A stretch of 64,000 nucleotides of DNA from Anaeramoeba ignava BMAN (Eukaryota > Protista > Anaeramoebae). The notes under the pieces were generated by a model, which did no database searches, was not told where the DNA came from, and saw nothing but the letters and a program-made list of their open reading frames with translations. The position numbers and the translations under genes are program-made. This document shows, one piece after another, positions 10,037-20,500 of this stretch. Numbering within the stretch: the stretch's first letter is position 1; every line of letters starts with the position of its first letter. Where the stretch lies: contig JAPDFW010000071.1 of assembly GCA_028826165.1 (NCBI GenBank), positions 62,001 to 126,000 on the forward strand. The letters are read 5' to 3'.

Positions 10037-12572
10037 ATGAGTTTTAAAAGGATTTCAAAACTTTTAAAACATTATTCTTCAACAAACCAGTTAAAAGGAC
10101 ATAAAAAAAATGTACATTATCTTGCTTGGAATTTATCAGATAAACTTGGTATTTTAATTTTTATAAAAAAATTGAAAATGAAAAAATTTCAAAAATATTT
10201 ATTTAAATTTTTATTTTTATAAAAAGCATCTGGAAGTGGAGATTTAACAGCAAGAATTTGGGCTCCAGATTCTTCTAGATATGTAAAAAATGAAAATAAA
10301 ATGGAATATTCTTTTATTCTTTTATTCTCTTTTTTTTTTTTGGAATCAAATTTACAATTCCAAAAATGAAACAAATCCATTTAGAATCAAAAATATATTT
10401 AATTTAGAAATAAATCAAAAATATATTTAATTTATAAATAAATCAAAAATGGATTTAATTTATAAATAAATTAAAAATATATTTAATTTATAAATAAATC
10501 AAGAATGGATTTAATTTATAAATAAATCAAAAACATATTTAAATTATAAATAAATCAAAAATATATTTAATTTATAAATAAATCAAAAATATATTTAATT
10601 TAGAAATATATTTAATTTAGAAATAAATCAAAAATATATTTAATTTATAAATAAATCAAAAAAATATATTTAATTTAGAATCAAAAATATATATTTAATT
10701 TATAAATGAATCAAAAATATATTGATTTTATAAATAAATCAAAAAATATATTAAATTTATAAATAAATCAAAAATATATTTAATTTATAAATAAATCAAA
10801 AATATATTTAATTTATAAATAAATCAAAAATGGATTTAATTTAGAAATAAATCAAAAATATATTAAATTTATCAAAAAATAAATCAAAAATGGATTTAAT
10901 TTATAAATAAATCAAAAATATATTTAATTTATAAATAAATCAAAAATATATTTAATTTAGAAATCAAAAATATATTAAATTTATAAATAAATCAGAAATA
11001 TATTTAATTTATAAATAAATCAAAAATGGATTTAATTTAGAAATAAATCAAAAATGGATTTAATTTATAAATAAATCAAAAATATATTTAATTTAGAAAT
11101 AAATCAAAAATATATTTAATTTATAAATAAATCGAAAATATATTTAATTTAGAAATAAATCAAAAATATATTTATTTTAGAAATAAATCAGAAATGGATT
11201 TAATTTAGAAATAAATCAAAAATATATTTAAATTATAAATAAATCAAAAATGTATTTAATTTATAAATAAATCAAAAATGGATTTAATTTAGAAATAAAT
11301 CAAAAATGGATTTAATTTAGAAATAAATCAAAAATGGATTTAATTTAGAAATAAATCAAAAATGGATTTAATTTAGAAATAAATCAAAAATGGATTTAAT
11401 TTAGAATCAAAAATATATTGATTTTATAAATAAATCAAAAATATATTAAATTTATAAATAAATCAAAAATGGATTTAATTTATAAATAAATCAAAAATAG
11501 ATTTAATTTAGAAATATATTTAATTTAGAAATAAATCAAAAATATATTTAATTTATAAATAAATCAAAAATATATTGATTTTATAAATCAAAAATGGATT
11601 TAATTTAGAAATTAATTTATAATTGTATTCAAAATTGAAAAAAAAAAACACAAATTCTTTTTATAAGGTTTGCAATCTAGTTCTTGAAGGTCACGAAAAT
11701 AGTGTAGACCAGCTTTGTTGGTCACCAATAGAACTTGATCTTCTTGCAACAGCATCAGGAGATAAAACAGTTCGAATATGGGATACACGAACTGGAAAAT
11801 CAAATTGTGTTATTCCAACAACTGGAGAAAATATCAATATAACATGGAGTCCTGATGGAAAAAGTATTGCAGTTGGAAATAAATCTGATGTTATCAGTTT
11901 TATCAATGTGGAAATGCAAAAAATTACAAAAAACACAAGATTTCCTTTTGAAGTTAATGAGATTTCATGGGATAAATCAGGCCAGTATTTTTTCATCACA
12001 ACTGGAAGAGGAACAGTTGAAATTTTCCGTTGGCCTTCTTTGGAAAAGGTTATGGTTCTTCAAGCACACACTTCAAACTGCTTTTGCATTGATTTTGATC
12101 CCACTCAACAATATTTCGCTGTAGGAAGTGCTGATTCGTTGGTTAGTTTGTGGGATCTTAACGAGTTGATTTGTCTCAGAACAATTCCTCGTTTGAAATG
12201 GCCTGTAAGAGCTGTTAGTTTTTCTTATGATGGAAAATTGATTGCATCTGGATCTGAAGATAAATTTATTGATATTGTAAATTTAAAAGCAAAAAAAAAA
12301 AAAGTTCTCATTTTTAAAAATTTGAACTAGCAAATATTTATATAAATTTTTTTTTTTGTTTTTTTTTTTAAATTTAGTCTTGGGTTGAAAATGGAGAATT
12401 TGTTACTTCAATTCCTCTTGAAGGTGGAATGAATTCTATTGCTTGGCATCCTAATAAATATATTCTTGCTTATGCTGGAGAATCTTATGAACAAGGAGGA
12501 GTTATTCAACTTTATGGAATTTTTGATCAATACAAAAATAAACATTCAAATTCACGTTCTGAAAAAAAATAA
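10037..12572 (+). CDS. THOC3: THO complex subunit 3 (WD40)
   Basis: Spliced exons 10037-10148, 10227-~10282, ~11669-12276 and ~12378-12572 give GHKKNVHYLAWN...LASGSGD, GHENSVDQLCWSP, GENINITWSPDG, AHTSNCFCIDFDP...AVGSADSLVSLWD and AWHPNKYILAYAG, typical of THOC3/TEX1. Confidence 0.9.
10380..11615. repeat. ~26-bp degenerate minisatellite (AAATAAATCAAAAATATATTTAATTTAT/G) filling THOC3 intron 2
   Basis: Dozens of imperfect tandem copies visible. Confidence 0.9.
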
Positions 12573-12652
12573 ACAATTCAATAAAATAATAAAATACAAA
12601 AAAAATTTTTTTTTCCTTTTTTTTTTTTCTAAAATTCATTTTTTTTCTTTTT

Positions 12653-12691
<39 letters not shown>

Positions 12692-12695
12692 CTTC

Positions 12696-15600
12696 ATGTC
12701 TAATCCTAAACATCCATTACAAATTGAAAATACAATAGAAAAATCCAAATCAAAATCCAAAGAAAAATCAAAAGAAAAATCAAAAGAAAAATCAAAAGAA
12801 AAATCAAAAGAAAAATCAAACAATCAAGGAGATAATATCAAAGTTTTATTAAGAATACGACCCGTAATTCCACGGGAAGTGCAATTAGGAGTTGAAAAAT
12901 GTGTTGAAACAGATACAGAAAAAAATCTAATTATTTTTCATGGAAAAAAAGAAGAGAAATTTTATTTTGATTGTATTGGGCCTGAAAATACGACCCAAGT
13001 GGAAGTATTTGAAATGGCAGGAAAAGGAATATCAGAATCATTTGTAGAAGGATATCATGGAACAATATTTGCTTATGGACAAACAGCATCAGGAAAAACA
13101 TTCACAATGACGGGGCCAGCAATACCGTCAGTAAATATGGCGAAGAAAAACCCCGAAATGTTTGAATTGCGAGGACTTATTCCTCGAATGGTGGAATATA
13201 TATTTGATTTAATTGAAAAGGAAAAAATCACGTTTCTGCAAAAATATCCTGATGGTCAAATTTTTCACACAATAACTTGTCAATATTTTGAAATATACAA
13301 TGAAATCATCACCGATTTATTGAATCCCCATTTAACAAATCTTCATATCAGGGAAAATATTATGTATGGAGGAACTTATGTTGAAGGAATAACCCAAATC
13401 ATTGTTAAATCACCCGGTGATATTTATAATATTTTGGAGCGTGGTGGCGAGAACCGCACTGTTGGGGAAACATGTGCGAATAAAGAAAGCTCAAGATCAC
13501 ACAGTTGTTTTACAATTGTTCTTGAGCATAAAGAAGTGGAAGTCAATGGATTAACTCGAATGAGAAGTTCCCAATTAAATTTGATTGATCTTGCTGGTTC
13601 AGAACGACAAAAAATCACAAAAGCCACAGGTCAACGGCTCAAAGAGGCTGGGAACATCAACCGTAGTTTACTTACTTTGGGAAATGTTATTTCCGCTCTT
13701 GTTGAAAAATCTACTATTAATAAGGGCCGTTTTATTCCTTATCGTGATTCTAAATTGACTTTTTTGCTCAAGGAATCTTTGGGTGGAAATAATAAAACTT
13801 TTATTATTTGTAATGTTTCTCCAAATCATACTTCAAGACTGGAAACTTTTTCTACTTTGCAATTTGCTCAACGTGCAAATAAGATTCAAAATTTATCAAA
13901 GATTAATGAATCTACAACTGGTTCTTTTGAAGAATTGAAAAAAGAAATTGCGAGATTGAAAGCGAAGATTAAGGGTTTTTATTTAATATTAATTTTGAAT
14001 TTAATTTTAATTTTGAATTTAATATTGAATTTTGAATTGAATTTTGAATTTAATTTTGAATTTAATATTGAATTTAATTTTGAATTTAATTTTGAATTTA
14101 ATTTTGAATTTAATATTGAATTTAATATTGAATTTTGAATTTTGAATTTAATTTTAATTTTGAATTTAATTTTGAATTTAATATTGAATTTAATTTTGAA
14201 TTTAATTTTGAATTTATTATTAAATTTTGAATTTAATTTTGAATTTAATTTTGAATTTAATTTTGAATTTAATATTGAATTTTGAATTTAATTTTGAATT
14301 GAATTTTAAATTGAATTTAATTTTAAATTGAATTTTAAATTGAATTTAATTTTGAATTCATTTCTTTTTAGAACTTCAAGCTCAACTCGCTTCTCGTCGT
14401 CCAAATGTAAGAGAGGAAATGAAACAAATTTTACTTCAAAAAGATCAAGAAATTAAAAATCTTCAAAATCAACTTGCTGAAATGACAGAAATTAAAAATA
14501 CACTTTCTCAAAAAGTTTCTCGATCTCAATCTGAATCTCAATATCCTTCTCAATTTTTTTCAAATGAAAATCAAAATGTAAGAAAAAAAAATAATAGAAA
14601 AGATAAAAATTTTTTCTTTTATAAATTTACTAATTCAATTTTTTTTTTGTTCCACTTTTTTTTTCCAATTTTTTAATTTTTTTAAATTTTTTAAAAGATT
14701 TTAGAAAAAACAAAAGAAGAAAACTTAAATTTAAATTTAAATCAAAATGAAAATGTAAATCAAAATGAAAATCAAAATGAAAAATTTTAATTTTGATTTT
14801 TTAAATTGAAAAAACATTTTAAATAGAAAAATTTAAATCTTGATCTTAATCCTCAAATCCTCGAAATTGAAAATTCAAAATTACAAGAAGAGATACAAAA
14901 ACTTTCTGAAGAAAAAGAGGATATTGAAAAACAATTAGAGAAACAAAAAGCAACCAATTCAAAAACGGAATTTGAATTATCAGAACAAAAACAATCATAC
15001 GATAATTTATTAACAGAAAATGAACTTTTACAAAAGAAAATTGCAAAACAAAGACAAGAATATAATTCTATGAATGTGACACTATCTGAATCTAAATCCA
15101 AATTAGCAGAAAAGAATGAAATTGTAAACAATCAAAAGAAACAGATCAAAAAACTTCAAACGGAAATTCAATCCAAAACAAAATATGACAAAGCAGTACT
15201 TCTAAAGCAAATATCACAAATGCAAGAAGAAAAAGAAAATCTACAACAAGATTCAGATGCATTACAAAAACAGCTGATCCTTCGAATTCGGGAAAATGAT
15301 GATCTCATAGAGAGATTTCGAACCACAGAGAGTTCTTTACAAACTTCACAAGCAGCAGTTGAAAAATTAAATCACATAAATTTCGAGCTCAAAAAATCTC
15401 TCAGAAGAACTCAGCGTGAATTGAGTAGATATAAACGAAGTGGAATTGCAGACTCTGGAAATCTTGATTTTTCTGATTCAAGTTCAATTGACTCTTCTGA
15501 ATCACAAGATTCTTTTACAACAGAACTTAATTTTGAGCTCACTTCTCAAAAATCTTTTCGAATTATCCCAAAAGCCACTCCCCAAACTTCGCATAAATCC

Positions 15601-17383
15601 GAATCAAAATCGGATGACGAAACAACTTCTAATCTCGAAGTTGATATTCAAGTTCCTGAAAATGAAAAACATCAAATTCAACTTGATTTTCCAAAAAATG
15701 AGAAAAAAGATTTTAATAAAAAAGATTTTATTGAAAATTGGGTTTCCAATCAAAATGGCAATTCAAAAAACCATGAACAAACAAACCAAGACAGCAAACA
15801 ACCAGAAAAGAATTATGTGGATTTAACTAATAGCGTAAATGAGAATTTATCTTATCATGGATTGGAAGAAATTGAGAATATTGTTGAAGACTCAAAAGAT
15901 CAACCAAAAGAAAATAATGAGAATCAAAACCAGAATCCAGAAGTTTTTCCTGAAGATTCTGTTTTATTTGAAGAAAATCCAGAACAAATCACGCGGCAAA
16001 ATGAAATTATGCGAATTGAATTAGAAAAAAAACTTCAACAAGCAACAGAACTTTTTACATTGCAATCCAAAATTGAATTAGAAAGAATTCTTCTTGAAAG
16101 AACCATTTATTTTGATTTCCATATTACTCCTTCAGGATATCCTTTAGGAGCTTGCACTTTGTTTAAATTCATGAAGGATAATTCAGCTTTTGAATCTGAA
16201 AATTATAGAATTCTTGAAGTATTTATTGAATCAATGGAATTATTATTTAATTCATTTCGTCGTGAATCAAATGATTGTATCAAGTTTATTTCAAATATTT
16301 CATTTATTTTGGCCTTGATTTCTCAATATATTCCTGAAAATCAACTCAATGCTGATTACAACAAGAAATTTTATAATGAATTAGTTTCTCTTTTATCTCA
16401 AGCTTTATCAAAATTTATTGATGAAACAACTTCTTCAATGAGAATTGTTATTACAATTGCTTTTTTACAACAAAAACATAATATTGTTCTTGATAGTTCT
16501 CATATTTTCCGTGAATCTAGAAAGAGATCTGATGATGTTTCTCCAACTGAAATTGTTTCTCATCTTCAAAAGATTTATAAAATTTTAGATTTGCATCAAA
16601 TTTTTAAAATTATTCAAATTTATATTTTTGATAAAATTGTTGCATTTATTAATTCTTCATTAGTTGAAGATATGATTTCTAAATCTGTTTTATGTACAGC
16701 TCATAATGCACTTCAAATTAAGGAAGCTTTATCAAATCTTGAGTTATGGTTTTCACAAATTGGAATGAATTCATTGAAGTAAATTTAAATTATAATTTCA
16801 ATTTTAATTTTAATTTTAATTTTAATTTTAATTTTAATTTTAATTTTAATTTTAATTTAAATTTTAATTTTAATTTTAATTTTAATTTTAATTTTAATTT
16901 AAATTTGAATAGACAAAAAATTTATGGAATTAGAGAATCTTGTGATTGTTTAATACTTAATAAAGGAATTATTCGAGATCAAAAAAATGGATATAATTTT
17001 TGTTTTGAAATTTGTCCACATTTAAAACCTCAACAAATCCTTTCAATTTTATCAAATTTTAGACCAGATGAGTAAATAAATAATTTTTCTATCATAAAAA
17101 AAAAAATTTAAATAAGAAAATTAATTAATTAATTTATTATTATTATTTAAATTATAGATTTGATGATCAACCAATTCCTCCTTATCTTTTAAAGATTTTC
17201 CGACAATCTTCTTTTTTCAAAACTGGGAATACCACTGAAGATCAAAAAGAAGATTTAGATGAAAATAATCTTGAAATAGATTTTAAACAAATTTACACAA
17301 AAGAATGGTATAAACTTTCAGCTCCAAGTTTAATTTCTTCAGTTAAAGATTTTATGACTTTTTTTTCAGAAAAACAGAATTAA
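12696..17383 (+). CDS. Kinesin (KIF15/kinesin-12-like motor) with coiled coil and C-terminal myosin V/XI-like globular tail (DIL) domain
   Basis: Exons 12696-13974, 14372-14577, 14698-14754, 14827-16778, 16913-17071 and 17158-17383 are all GT-AG and frame-consistent (~1292 aa). Motor motifs: AYGQTASGKT, NKESSRSH, DLAGSE, IPYRDSKLT. Tail: GYPLGACTLFK...AFESE, LCTAHNALQIKEALSNLELW, ICPHLKPQQILSILSNFRPDEFD. Confidence 0.85.
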
Positions 17384-17545: not shown

Positions 17546-20500
17546 TCATTTATGTTTCCAAATTTTAATTGAGTTTTCAATACTTGCGACAATATTTTTA
17601 TTCTCACGATCCCAAGCAACAAATTTAGCAGGTTTATCAGTTTTCAAATTTGTTTTATTTTTTTTAGCTAAAATATCCCAAATAAACAAAGTATTTTGAC
17701 AACTTGAAATAACATAATTTTGACAAGGAGAAAAAACTGCATTTTTACGAGTTGGAGAAATTTCTGCACTTGGAGGTTTAAATTCTGCAAGTGGTTGAGT
17801 AGTATTATAAACATCGAATATTTTGAATGAACTTTGAGTTGTGATTAAAAGTTGGAGATTATCAGGAGAAAGAGAAATTGATAGTATTTGTGAGTCTTGT
17901 TCCGGGAATTCATCAATAACTTTTCTTGTATTTAAATTCCACACTTTTATTTTCCCATCAACATGTGATGATAAAAATTCTCTTTGATTTCTAACTGCAA
18001 TTGATATGCATGGACTTGATGTTTCAAGTGTTGTTGTTTTTTGATTTTCTATGTTATATAATATTAAGTTATTCTCCATTCCTCCTGATATAAAAATAGT
18101 TCCATCATCAATAAATTTTGCATCTGAGATACTTTTGTTTGTAATTGATTTATAAAACTTTCCATGAAAAATTTTAAATCAATTTTCAATTTTAAATCAA
18201 TTTTAAATTTTAAATCAATTTTCAATTTTCAATCAATATTAAATCAATTTTAAATCAATATTTAATTCAATATTAATTCAATATTTAAATCAATATTTAA
18301 ATCAATATTTAAATCAATATTTAAATCAATTTTAAATCAATTTTAAATCAATTTTCAATTTTAAATCAATTTTAAATCAATTTTAAATCAATTTTCAATT
18401 TTAAATTTTAAATTTTAAATCAATTTTAAATCAATTTTAAATCAATTTTAAATCAATTTTAAATTTTAAATTTTAAATCAATATTTAAATCAATTTTAAA
18501 TAAATTTTAAATCAATTTTAAATAAATTTTAAATCAATTTTAAGTTTTAAATTATTTTTTTTTTAGGGAAAAAAGTTCCTGATTTTTTTTTTTGCTTTTT
18601 TATTTATTTCCTTACAATGTGTTTTAATTGATTCATTTCGACAATACTAACAGATCCTTGATCAGTTGTAGATAATAGATAATTATCATTTTTAGTAAAA
18701 TCAAATGAACGAATTCCATAACTTTTTCCAAATTTTATCGATTTATGTAACTAAAAATTTAAATAAAAATTTTAATTGAATTTTGATTTTAATTTTAATT
18801 TTAATTTTAATTTTTTCAAACTTTTGCTAACTGTGAATCCCATAAATTAATTCTTCCATCATGATCTCCTGTTGCAATGATGTTTCCTGAATGATTTAAA
18901 CAAAGTGAACTTATAAAATGTTTGTGAACATCCTTTTTGTTTTGTTTTTAAAAAAGAGAGAAAGAAATCATTTTATAAAATTAATTTTTAAATTAAAATA
19001 AATAAACCAACCTTTATTTTTTTAGTTTGATTCCAAGATACAGAAAGTGAATCTATTTTTGGAGTTGTTTTTTTCCTTTTTTTTTTAAAAAACATACGAA
19101 TTTAATTTATAATTTAATATTGAATTTAATTTATAATTTAATTTATAATTGAATTTAATTTATAATTTAATATTGAATTTATTATTAAATTTAATTTATA
19201 ATTTAATTTATAATTTAATTTTGAATTTAATTTATGATTTATAATTTAATTTATAATTTAATTTTGAATTTAATTTATAATTTAATTTATATTTTAATTT
19301 ATAATTTAATTTTGAATTTAATTTATAATTTAATGTTGAATTTAATTTTGAATTTAATTTATAATTTAATTTATAATTTAATTTATATTTTAATTTATAA
19401 TTTTAATTTATAATTTAATTTATAATTTAATTTATAATTTAATTTATAATTTTAATTTATAATTTAATTTATAATTTTAATTTATAATTTAATTTATAAT
19501 TTAATTTATAATTTAATTTATAATTTTAATTTATAATTTAATTTATAATTTAATTTATAATTTAATTTATAATTTAATTTATAATTTTAATTTATAATTT
19601 AATTTATAATTTAATTTATAATTTAATTTATAATTTAATTTGAATTTAATTTATAATTTAATTTATAATTTAATTTATATTTTAATTTATAATTTAATTT
19701 ATATTTTTAATTTATAATTTGATTTATAATTTAATTTATAATTTGATTTATAATTTAATTTTGAATTTATATTTTAATTTATAATTTAATTTATAATTTA
19801 TTATTGAATTTTATAATTGAATTTATAATTTAATTTAATTTATAATTTAATTTTATAATTTAATTTTATAATTTATTATTGAATTTAATATTGAATTTAA
19901 TTTATAATTTAATTTATAATTTATTTTATAATTTATTATTGAATTTAATATTGAATTTAATTTATAATTTAATTTATAATTTAATTTTTGAATTTAATTT
20001 TGAATTTAATTTTGAATTTAATATATAATTTTATTTATAATTTAATATATAATTTAATTTATAATTTAATTTATAATTTAATTTATAATTTAATTTTGAA
20101 TTTTATTTATAATTTAATTTATAATTTAATTTTGAATTAAATATTGAATTTATTTTATTAATTTATTTTATAATTTAATTTATATTTTAATTTATAATTT
20201 ATTATTGAATTAAATATTGAATTTAATGAATACAAATCTTTCATATTTTCAATTTCATTTGAAAGTTGAGCAAATCTTTGATTTAATTCTTTTTCATTTT
20301 TTTCAATTTCCGCAATATTTTGTTGAAATTTTGAAATTTCGACTTGATATCTATTTGTTTCTTCTAAAACAGTTTGAAGTTCCCTTTGAATTTTTTTAGC
20401 ACCTGAAGTAAAATAATTTATATTTTCTTCAAATAAAAGTTTTTTTGTATTTAATTCTCTAATTTGGTTTTCAGTTGAATCATTTTCTTTCGTTAATCTT

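Follow-up and report, generated by a model that had tools for sequence, protein, structure and literature searches.

A predicted Anaeramoeba ignava gene joining a kinesin-12-type motor to a myosin V/XI-type cargo-binding tail

INTRODUCTION

In nature, motors of the actin and of the microtubule system rarely exchange their cargo tails, with KCBP as the textbook case, and kinesin–myosin tail chimeras are also known as engineered proteins. Kinesin-12 tails known so far consist of long coiled coils that contain regions for targeting to the spindle or phragmoplast; an example of such C-terminal targeting is the leucine zipper of KIF15, which binds TPX2/Ki-67. Here, we describe a gene of Anaeramoeba ignava that is likely to encode a natural chimera of another composition, in which a kinesin-12-type motor is followed by a stalk and by a myosin V/XI-type cargo tail (DIL domain) and which would serve cargo transport on microtubules. 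The gene is located at positions 12696-17383 (+ strand) of a stretch of 64,000 nucleotides (nt) from strain BMAN (GenBank assembly GCA_028826165.1, contig JAPDFW010000071.1, positions 62,001 to 126,000 of the forward strand). This stretch is referred to as the window, and positions without a contig name are positions within it.

A reading of the DNA sequence alone (the original prediction) had proposed a kinesin motor fused to a globular tail as found in class V/XI myosins. In the literature on kinesins with a DIL/dilute domain and on kinesins and myosins of Anaeramoeba, no description of a kinesin-DIL protein was found, and the main text of the A. ignava genome paper mentions neither kinesin, myosin nor DIL (PMC11550330). 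Kinesin-DIL proteins are presumably part of the public A. ignava proteome without having drawn comment.

RESULTS

Kinesin motor and stalk

Domain, fold and database searches were run on single exons or pieces of exons, and the joined protein was built by local scripts. The Pfam family Kinesin (PF00225) matched exon 1 with 338 bits at residues 53-397 (nt 12852-13886), which covers profile positions 1-327 and thus a complete motor domain. The motor motifs are canonical (P-loop GQTASGKT, switch I SSRSH, switch II DLAGSE), and the motor is followed by the neck motif INESTTG...LK.EI..LK. The best match in the PDB was KIF15 with 308 bits, followed by the next kinesin family with 232 bits (a margin of 76 bits). 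Among the best 120 proteins of 234-745 amino acids (aa), obtained from 5.8 billion proteins searched, all named ones were KIF15, KIN-12B/E or POK (42-53% identity). The N-terminal motor is therefore, judged by its best match only, of the kinesin-12 (KIF15) type. DIL was found in none of these 120 kinesin-12-like relatives, a comparison that covers proteins of up to 745 aa, and scans of metagenomes with the motor yielded no relative.

The AlphaFold2 model of the tail (see below) is preceded by a long helix. In a homodimer prediction with two copies of the stalk (14827-15441), a score of 0.28 was obtained, compared with a mark of 0.32.

Globular tail

In exons 4-6, DIL (PF01843) is the sole Pfam match. 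It is divided into two halves, each of which exceeds the cut-off of 24 bits: exon 4 (nt 16624-16767) matches profile positions 2-49 with 27.0 bits and exon 5 matches positions 62-104 with 24.8 bits. Intron 4 coincides with the gap between profile positions 49 and 62. No exon had a Pfam match to Myosin_head, IQ or NT-C2 (PF10358), and the genome scan detected no NT-C2 on the contig that carries the gene (C72).

A phmmer search with the part of the tail encoded by exon 4 (265 aa) against 1.84 billion representative sequences resulted in 14 matches, all of which contained DIL as far as they were scanned and none of which contained a kinesin domain. Three of the database matches are A. ignava proteins (NCBI) with 98.5-99.6% identity to loci of the same genome. 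The closest relatives of the tail by sequence are Anaeramoeba proteins combining NT-C2 and DIL (e.g., KAJ5074139.1 and KAJ5068018.1; 24-28% identity). The phmmer matches were combined with the paralogs of the same genome in an alignment (A1), which also served as input for AlphaFold2. In this alignment, the motif GF..GKP.AA..IY.CL..W..FE of a flax myosin XI is matched by the beginning of the tail.

The AlphaFold2 model of the region 15982-16776 (265 aa) is all-helical (pLDDT 83.4, pTM 0.76). In Foldseek, the best 30 matches were without exception cargo-binding domains of myosin Va/Vb/Vc or plant myosin XI-K (TM 0.62-0.68, probability 1.0). VIA-align ranked MyoXI-K first with a Z score of 18.4, followed by Myo5a/b/c with approximately 17 (root-mean-square deviation 2.3-3.2 over 211-229 residues). 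Lower down were yeast Myo2 (approximately 15) and, with Z scores of 9-14, CATCHR tethers and the MUN domain of Munc13. The same CATCHR relatives appeared in an Atlas shape search with the tail; the Atlas searches as a whole returned generic kinesin, DIL or CATCHR clusters and nothing more specific. According to the DIL signature and the modelled fold, the tail is a globular cargo-binding tail of the myosin V/XI type, and the resemblance extends beyond the 105-aa DIL core.

These results bear out the fusion of a kinesin motor and a DIL tail put forward in the original prediction. The three tail segments quoted there are present, the first being the one that aligns to the start of the flax myosin XI tail, and the globular-tail fold, for which a Foldseek check had been suggested, was recovered with myosin V/XI tails as the best structural matches. 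The guess that the DNA came from a metamonad also proved right.

Gene structure

At the sequence level, the region was confirmed as a GT-AG spliced protein-coding gene with a predicted product of approximately 1,273-1,292 aa (Table 1). In the six-exon model, the joined frame is open across 1,292 codons, and five of five introns have GT..AG ends. Because 8.6% of the codons in the window are stops, the long open frames of exon 1 (426 codons, P ~2e-17) and exon 4 (650 codons, P ~4e-26) cannot be attributed to chance. The G+C content is 23-32% in the exons, except for exon 3, and approximately 20% in the surrounding DNA. The introns are 72-397 nt long with 3-12.5% G+C individually and 91.6% A+T when pooled; for A. 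ignava, 91.86% A+T in introns and 80.65% A+T in the genome have been reported (PMC11550330).

Exon 1 starts with an N-terminus of low complexity, rich in Lys, Ser and Glu, in which a 12-nt repeat is located (12727-12820). For exon 2, Pfam gave weak cross-matches to coiled-coil families and nothing else. Exon 4 encodes a helical stalk (~14827-15450), an acidic Ser/Asn-rich linker (~15450-15980) and the tail from ~15982 onward. Introns 1 and 4 consist almost entirely of minisatellite DNA, namely (TTAATTTTGAAT)x32 at 13989-14358 and (AATTTT)x21 at 16782-16910, respectively, and similar arrays are found at matching positions in introns of the paralogs described below. A (TTTC)x13 array was observed in the 5' flank (12640-12691).

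When searched alone, exon 5 aligns to residues 601-651 of P0003, directly after the match of the exon-4 tail (321-596), and exon 6 matches residues 645-712 of P0017, which adjoin the match of exon 5 (598-643). Both 3' junctions are thus supported by the collinearity of exons 4, 5 and 6 with uninterrupted annotated homologues. Exon 6 is also homologous to the final exon of the paralog on C58.

Six in-frame exons had been predicted. The frames, the phases and the GT..AG ends stood up, but the number of exons did not entirely: exon 3 is doubtful, since its G+C content resembles that of the introns and it is partly located within a 6/12-nt microsatellite (14733-14783). Because exon 2 ends and exon 4 starts in phase 0, a model with five exons is equally in frame. 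Without exon 3, the region 14578-14826 forms a single intron of 249 nt. The gene may therefore consist of five exons and not six, a point that counts against the model as first drawn.

Paralogs in the A. ignava genome

Three kinesin-DIL genes are present in the genome, namely the window gene and one each on C58 and C2. In the modelled C58 and C2 genes, a kinesin-12 motor, a stalk and DIL follow one another in the same order as in the window gene, each on one strand, and KIF15 is the best PDB match of both motors, too. Intron positions and phases are common to all three: one intron after the neck (phase 1), one inside DIL (phase 2) and one after the motif F..DE (phase 2). The second exon of the C2 paralog begins with ELQ, as does exon 2 of the window gene. 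The motors of C72 and C58 are 56% identical, that of C2 is 37-39% identical to either, and the three tails share 20-25% identity with one another. Since three paralogs that have diverged to this extent keep the same layout and intron positions, the comparison of their sequences indicates that the arrangement of motor, stalk and tail is old and has been maintained. The C2 motor is degenerate (P-loop GDKYSGKS, switch I SSLSH, switch II DLGDSQ); its product is probably an ATPase-dead pseudo-motor that retains the tail.

DIL, myosin and kinesin loci in the genome

In a six-frame domain scan of the 42.8-Mb assembly, approximately 24 DIL loci, 6 myosin-head loci and 12 kinesin loci were detected. 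No myosin head was located near DIL among the approximately 24 DIL and 6 myosin loci. Because no myosin is joined to DIL, A. ignava is, as far as its genome sequence tells, devoid of myosin V/XI. A TH1 tail was found in four of the approximately six myosin loci, which assigns these four to class I; two of them were shown to combine head, IQ and TH1. Surveys based on Giardia and Trichomonas had concluded that metamonads lost all myosins (PMC3942036), and the original prediction had likewise pointed to a lack of myosins in Giardia and Trichomonas. In A. ignava, the absence holds for myosin V/XI but not for myosins in general, and the point made by the original prediction is strengthened, since the genome contains myosins and yet none with DIL.

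At approximately 18 of the 24 DIL loci, DIL is preceded by NT-C2 on the same strand at a distance of 2-4.5 kb, and at three it is preceded by a kinesin motor, likewise on the same strand. The others comprise a tail-only protein (P0001, 402 aa), a locus whose DIL follows an extremely long coiled coil, and a locus with an uncharacterised N-terminus. Most DIL loci match as separate halves of the profile, which points to an intron at the same place within DIL. The family with NT-C2 and DIL is greatly expanded, and by sequence its proteins, not myosins, are nearest to the tail of the kinesin. Expansion has also been described for Rab1, 2, 5, 8, 11, 14 and further Rab families of A. ignava (PMC11550330).

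Some observations were made on individual loci. P0002 (KAJ5067834.1, 1,400 aa; G000:C115:873195-873467) has DIL as its sole Pfam domain, yet a match to NT-C2 precedes it on the same strand at a distance of approximately 3.9 kb; the first exon or exons may be missing from the public model of P0002. A protein search with the P0002 tail retrieved P0002 itself and two bird MYO5B proteins and no others. In A. flamelloides, the annotation of one gene of the NT-C2 and DIL type differs between strains, with a pair of adjacent proteins in one of them and a single protein in the other. Two kinesin motors of A. ignava (G000:C93:351500-354500 and G000:C27:34000-37500) contain an in-frame insert of approximately 290-360 aa that separates the P-loop region from the remainder of the motor, a feature that fits the inteins described from Anaeramoeba (PMC10710043). 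A kinesin-2 motor (KIF3B/OSM-3-like), a type serving intraflagellar transport, is encoded at G000:C110:46000-48500.

Table 1. Features of the kinesin-DIL gene, its neighbours and the loci compared with it
Feature	Position	Strand	Remarks
Upstream neighbour	11623-12572	+	THOC3-like WD40 protein; Pfam 303 bits, cut-off 305
Exon 1	12696-13974	+	Low-complexity N-terminus, kinesin motor, neck; ends in phase 1 at GT donor
Intron 1	13975-14371	+	GTTTTT...TTTTAG; 9% G+C; ~32 copies of a 12-nt minisatellite
Exon 2	14372-14577	+	Neck helix continued (ELQAQL...); in frame with exon 1; ends in phase 0
Exon 3 (doubtful)	14698-14754	+	57 nt, 19 codons; 12.3% G+C
Exon 4	14827-16778	+	650 codons; stalk, linker, first two thirds of globular tail; ends in phase 2
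Intron 4	16779-16912	+	GTAAAT...GAATAG; 3% G+C; (AATTTT)n; splits DIL
Exon 5	16913-17071	+	Second half of DIL; ends in phase 2 after ...FRPDE
Exon 6	17158-17383	+	C-terminal end of tail; TAA stop at 17381-17383
Downstream neighbour	17546-18079	-	Convergent WD40-repeat gene, ending at 17546
Kinesin-DIL paralog	C58 384868-388622		Modelled
Kinesin-DIL paralog	C2 121033-125174		Modelled
Motor of C2 paralog	L022:5578-6720 (L022 = G000:C2:118500-127000)	-	Degenerate
Myosin with TH1	C117:73845-76115
Myosin with TH1	C93:378561-382260
Myosin with TH1	C56:117098-121058
Myosin with TH1	C61:409025-411664
NT-C2 and DIL (example)	G000:C115:869294-873467
NT-C2 and DIL (example)	C60:294698-299060
NT-C2 and DIL (example)	C123:135826-140407

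DISCUSSION

Proposed function and alternative explanations

The chimeric motor would walk toward microtubule plus ends, as do other kinesins whose motor is N-terminal, and would probably form a dimer via the stalk. By analogy with myosin V/XI, the tail would recruit vesicles or organelles marked by Rab GTPases, either directly or by adaptors. Such microtubule transport would replace or supplement short-range transport along actin of the kind driven by myosin V in an amoeboid anaerobe with expanded Rab8/Rab11.

The points that weigh against this proposal concern the tail on the one hand and the unity of the gene on the other. The members of kinesin-12 that have been studied serve mainly to organise the spindle or phragmoplast rather than to transport vesicles. 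The identity of the tail to myosin V/XI tails amounts to only 13-16%, and the fold model spans the first 265 aa of the tail, the last 126 aa (exons 5-6) being located outside it. Moreover, the phylogeny of the tails is a star tree without resolution, so that one and several fusions are indistinguishable from the tails. A real fusion might carry a tail that is not a Rab or vesicle adaptor; it might be a targeting module for the spindle, the cortex or a tethering site, an autoinhibitory module or a CATCHR-like module, and the protein might have a mitotic or microtubule-organising role. We regard this as improbable, although several findings can be cited in its favour. The relatives of the motor are named for roles in the spindle or phragmoplast (KIF15, POK, KIN-12), and no further kinesin-12-type locus was found among those classified (the three motors and one other kinesin locus). 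The fold is common to CATCHR tethering subunits and the MUN domain (Z 9-14), and in autoinhibited myosin Va, a structure of which is among the matches (PDB 7yv9), the tail is folded back onto the motor. Against it, the myosin V/XI tails outscore the CATCHR proteins (Z 17-18 vs. <=14) and Pfam DIL is above its cut-off. In addition, the expansion of the tail family alongside the Rabs fits a diversity of cargoes better than a single mitotic role.

The second alternative assumes that splicing in silico wrongly joined two genes lying side by side on one strand, one for a short kinesin-12 and the other for a coiled-coil protein with DIL. In favour of two genes, the only public sequencing run holding the stretch is of unrecorded kind and none is on record as RNA. 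Retention of intron 2 would result in a motor-only product of approximately 530 aa with a stop at 14676. At C58, a separate tail gene is conceivable, because an ATG is found three codons after the acceptor of the large exon. Most DIL genes of the genome have N-termini other than a motor (NT-C2), the tail-only gene for P0001 exists, and the public annotation of a related species sometimes splits such genes. These arguments are outweighed by several others. All pieces are located on the + strand with compatible splice phases and are separated by only 72-397 nt of intron (88-97% A+T). Three old paralogous loci agree in the order and orientation of the pieces and in the intron phases. Within exon 4, the first ATG is preceded by 81 open codons (P ~7e-4), and this part has a coding-like sequence. 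The spacers to the neighbouring genes on either side measure only approximately 120-160 nt. Among the annotated proteins of 234-745 aa, none carries the motor of the window gene or that of C58, which is 56% identical to it, and among those of 357-1137 aa, none carries the tail of the window gene; other A. ignava proteins are plentiful in the database. Since no annotated protein of such a size matched, any public model that exists does not consist of the motor or the tail alone. From these features of the sequence, motor and tail are very probably parts of a single gene, and an erroneous junction of two genes is distinctly improbable.

That the window gene is a decaying or non-functional copy, for which the degenerate ATPase motifs of the C2 paralog could be quoted, is hardly credible, given that its exons are all open despite 8.6% stop codons, that its catalytic motifs are canonical and that the G+C content of exons is well above that of introns.

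Implications of a putative cargo-carrying kinesin

If the preferred reading of the window gene as a chimeric cargo motor is correct, cargo that is usually hauled on actin may travel on microtubules in A. ignava, and the module recognising Rabs and adaptors would be independent of the track. The kinesin-DIL proteins would be a handle on long-range traffic in an amoeboid metamonad whose Rabs number in the hundreds, as well as a natural counterpart of the artificial myosin V tail that engineers have placed on kinesin. The findings also bear on reconstructions of the ancestral motor set of eukaryotes, in that metamonads have kept the DIL tail where myosins carrying it are absent. The class I myosins retained by Anaeramoeba are contrary to the picture of metamonads having lost all myosins (PMC3942036).

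A more far-reaching scenario, which we offer tentatively and consider possible but less probable than not, is that Anaeramoeba lost or never had myosin V/XI and that the tail module moved to kinesin-12 (three genes) and to NT-C2 anchors (approximately 18), so that Rab-specified transport takes place on microtubules. A single cargo-adaptor system would in this way have changed its motor naturally, and the traffic could include that by which the bacterial symbiosome is built and fed, as well as the positioning of hydrogenosomes.

Comparison with known systems

The tail of the window gene resembles those of myosin V/XI (Myo5a/b/c, Myo2p, MyoXI-K) in the DIL signature, in the helical two-lobe fold over the modelled 265 aa, in the C-terminal position behind a long helical stalk and in the start motif of plant myosin XI. 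In contrast to these myosins, the gene bears a kinesin motor and no myosin head or IQ, and the sequence identity of the tails is low. With kinesin-12 (KIF15/Hklp2, KIN-12/POK/PAKRP), it has the N-terminal motor and the neck in common, and the predicted helical stalk that follows is probably of the same type; it differs in ending with a DIL tail instead of the long coiled coil of the known members. The Anaeramoeba proteins with NT-C2 and DIL, which are nearest to it in the tail, have a membrane-binding C2-type domain at the N-terminus and no motor.

A kinesin-family protein physically coupled to the globular tail of myosin V is also known from Smy1–Myo2 and from kinesin-1–myosin Va. FaSmy1 binds the tail of FaMyo2B (PMC4839718), and the Myo2-GTD-Smy1 complex (GTD, globular tail domain; 6ixq) is among the structural matches of the tail model. 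In these systems, separate proteins and a myosin motor are involved, whereas the tail described here is predicted to be covalently linked to the kinesin in a genome without myosin V. Like KCBP, the protein would be a natural kinesin with a myosin-type tail module, by which KCBP gained new functions (PMC4574192). In KCBP, a kinesin-14, the motor is C-terminal and minus-end-directed, and the tail is a MyTH4-FERM module of the myosin VII/X/XV type; the A. ignava gene, in contrast, combines an N-terminal motor of a plus-end-directed type with a tail of the myosin V/XI type.

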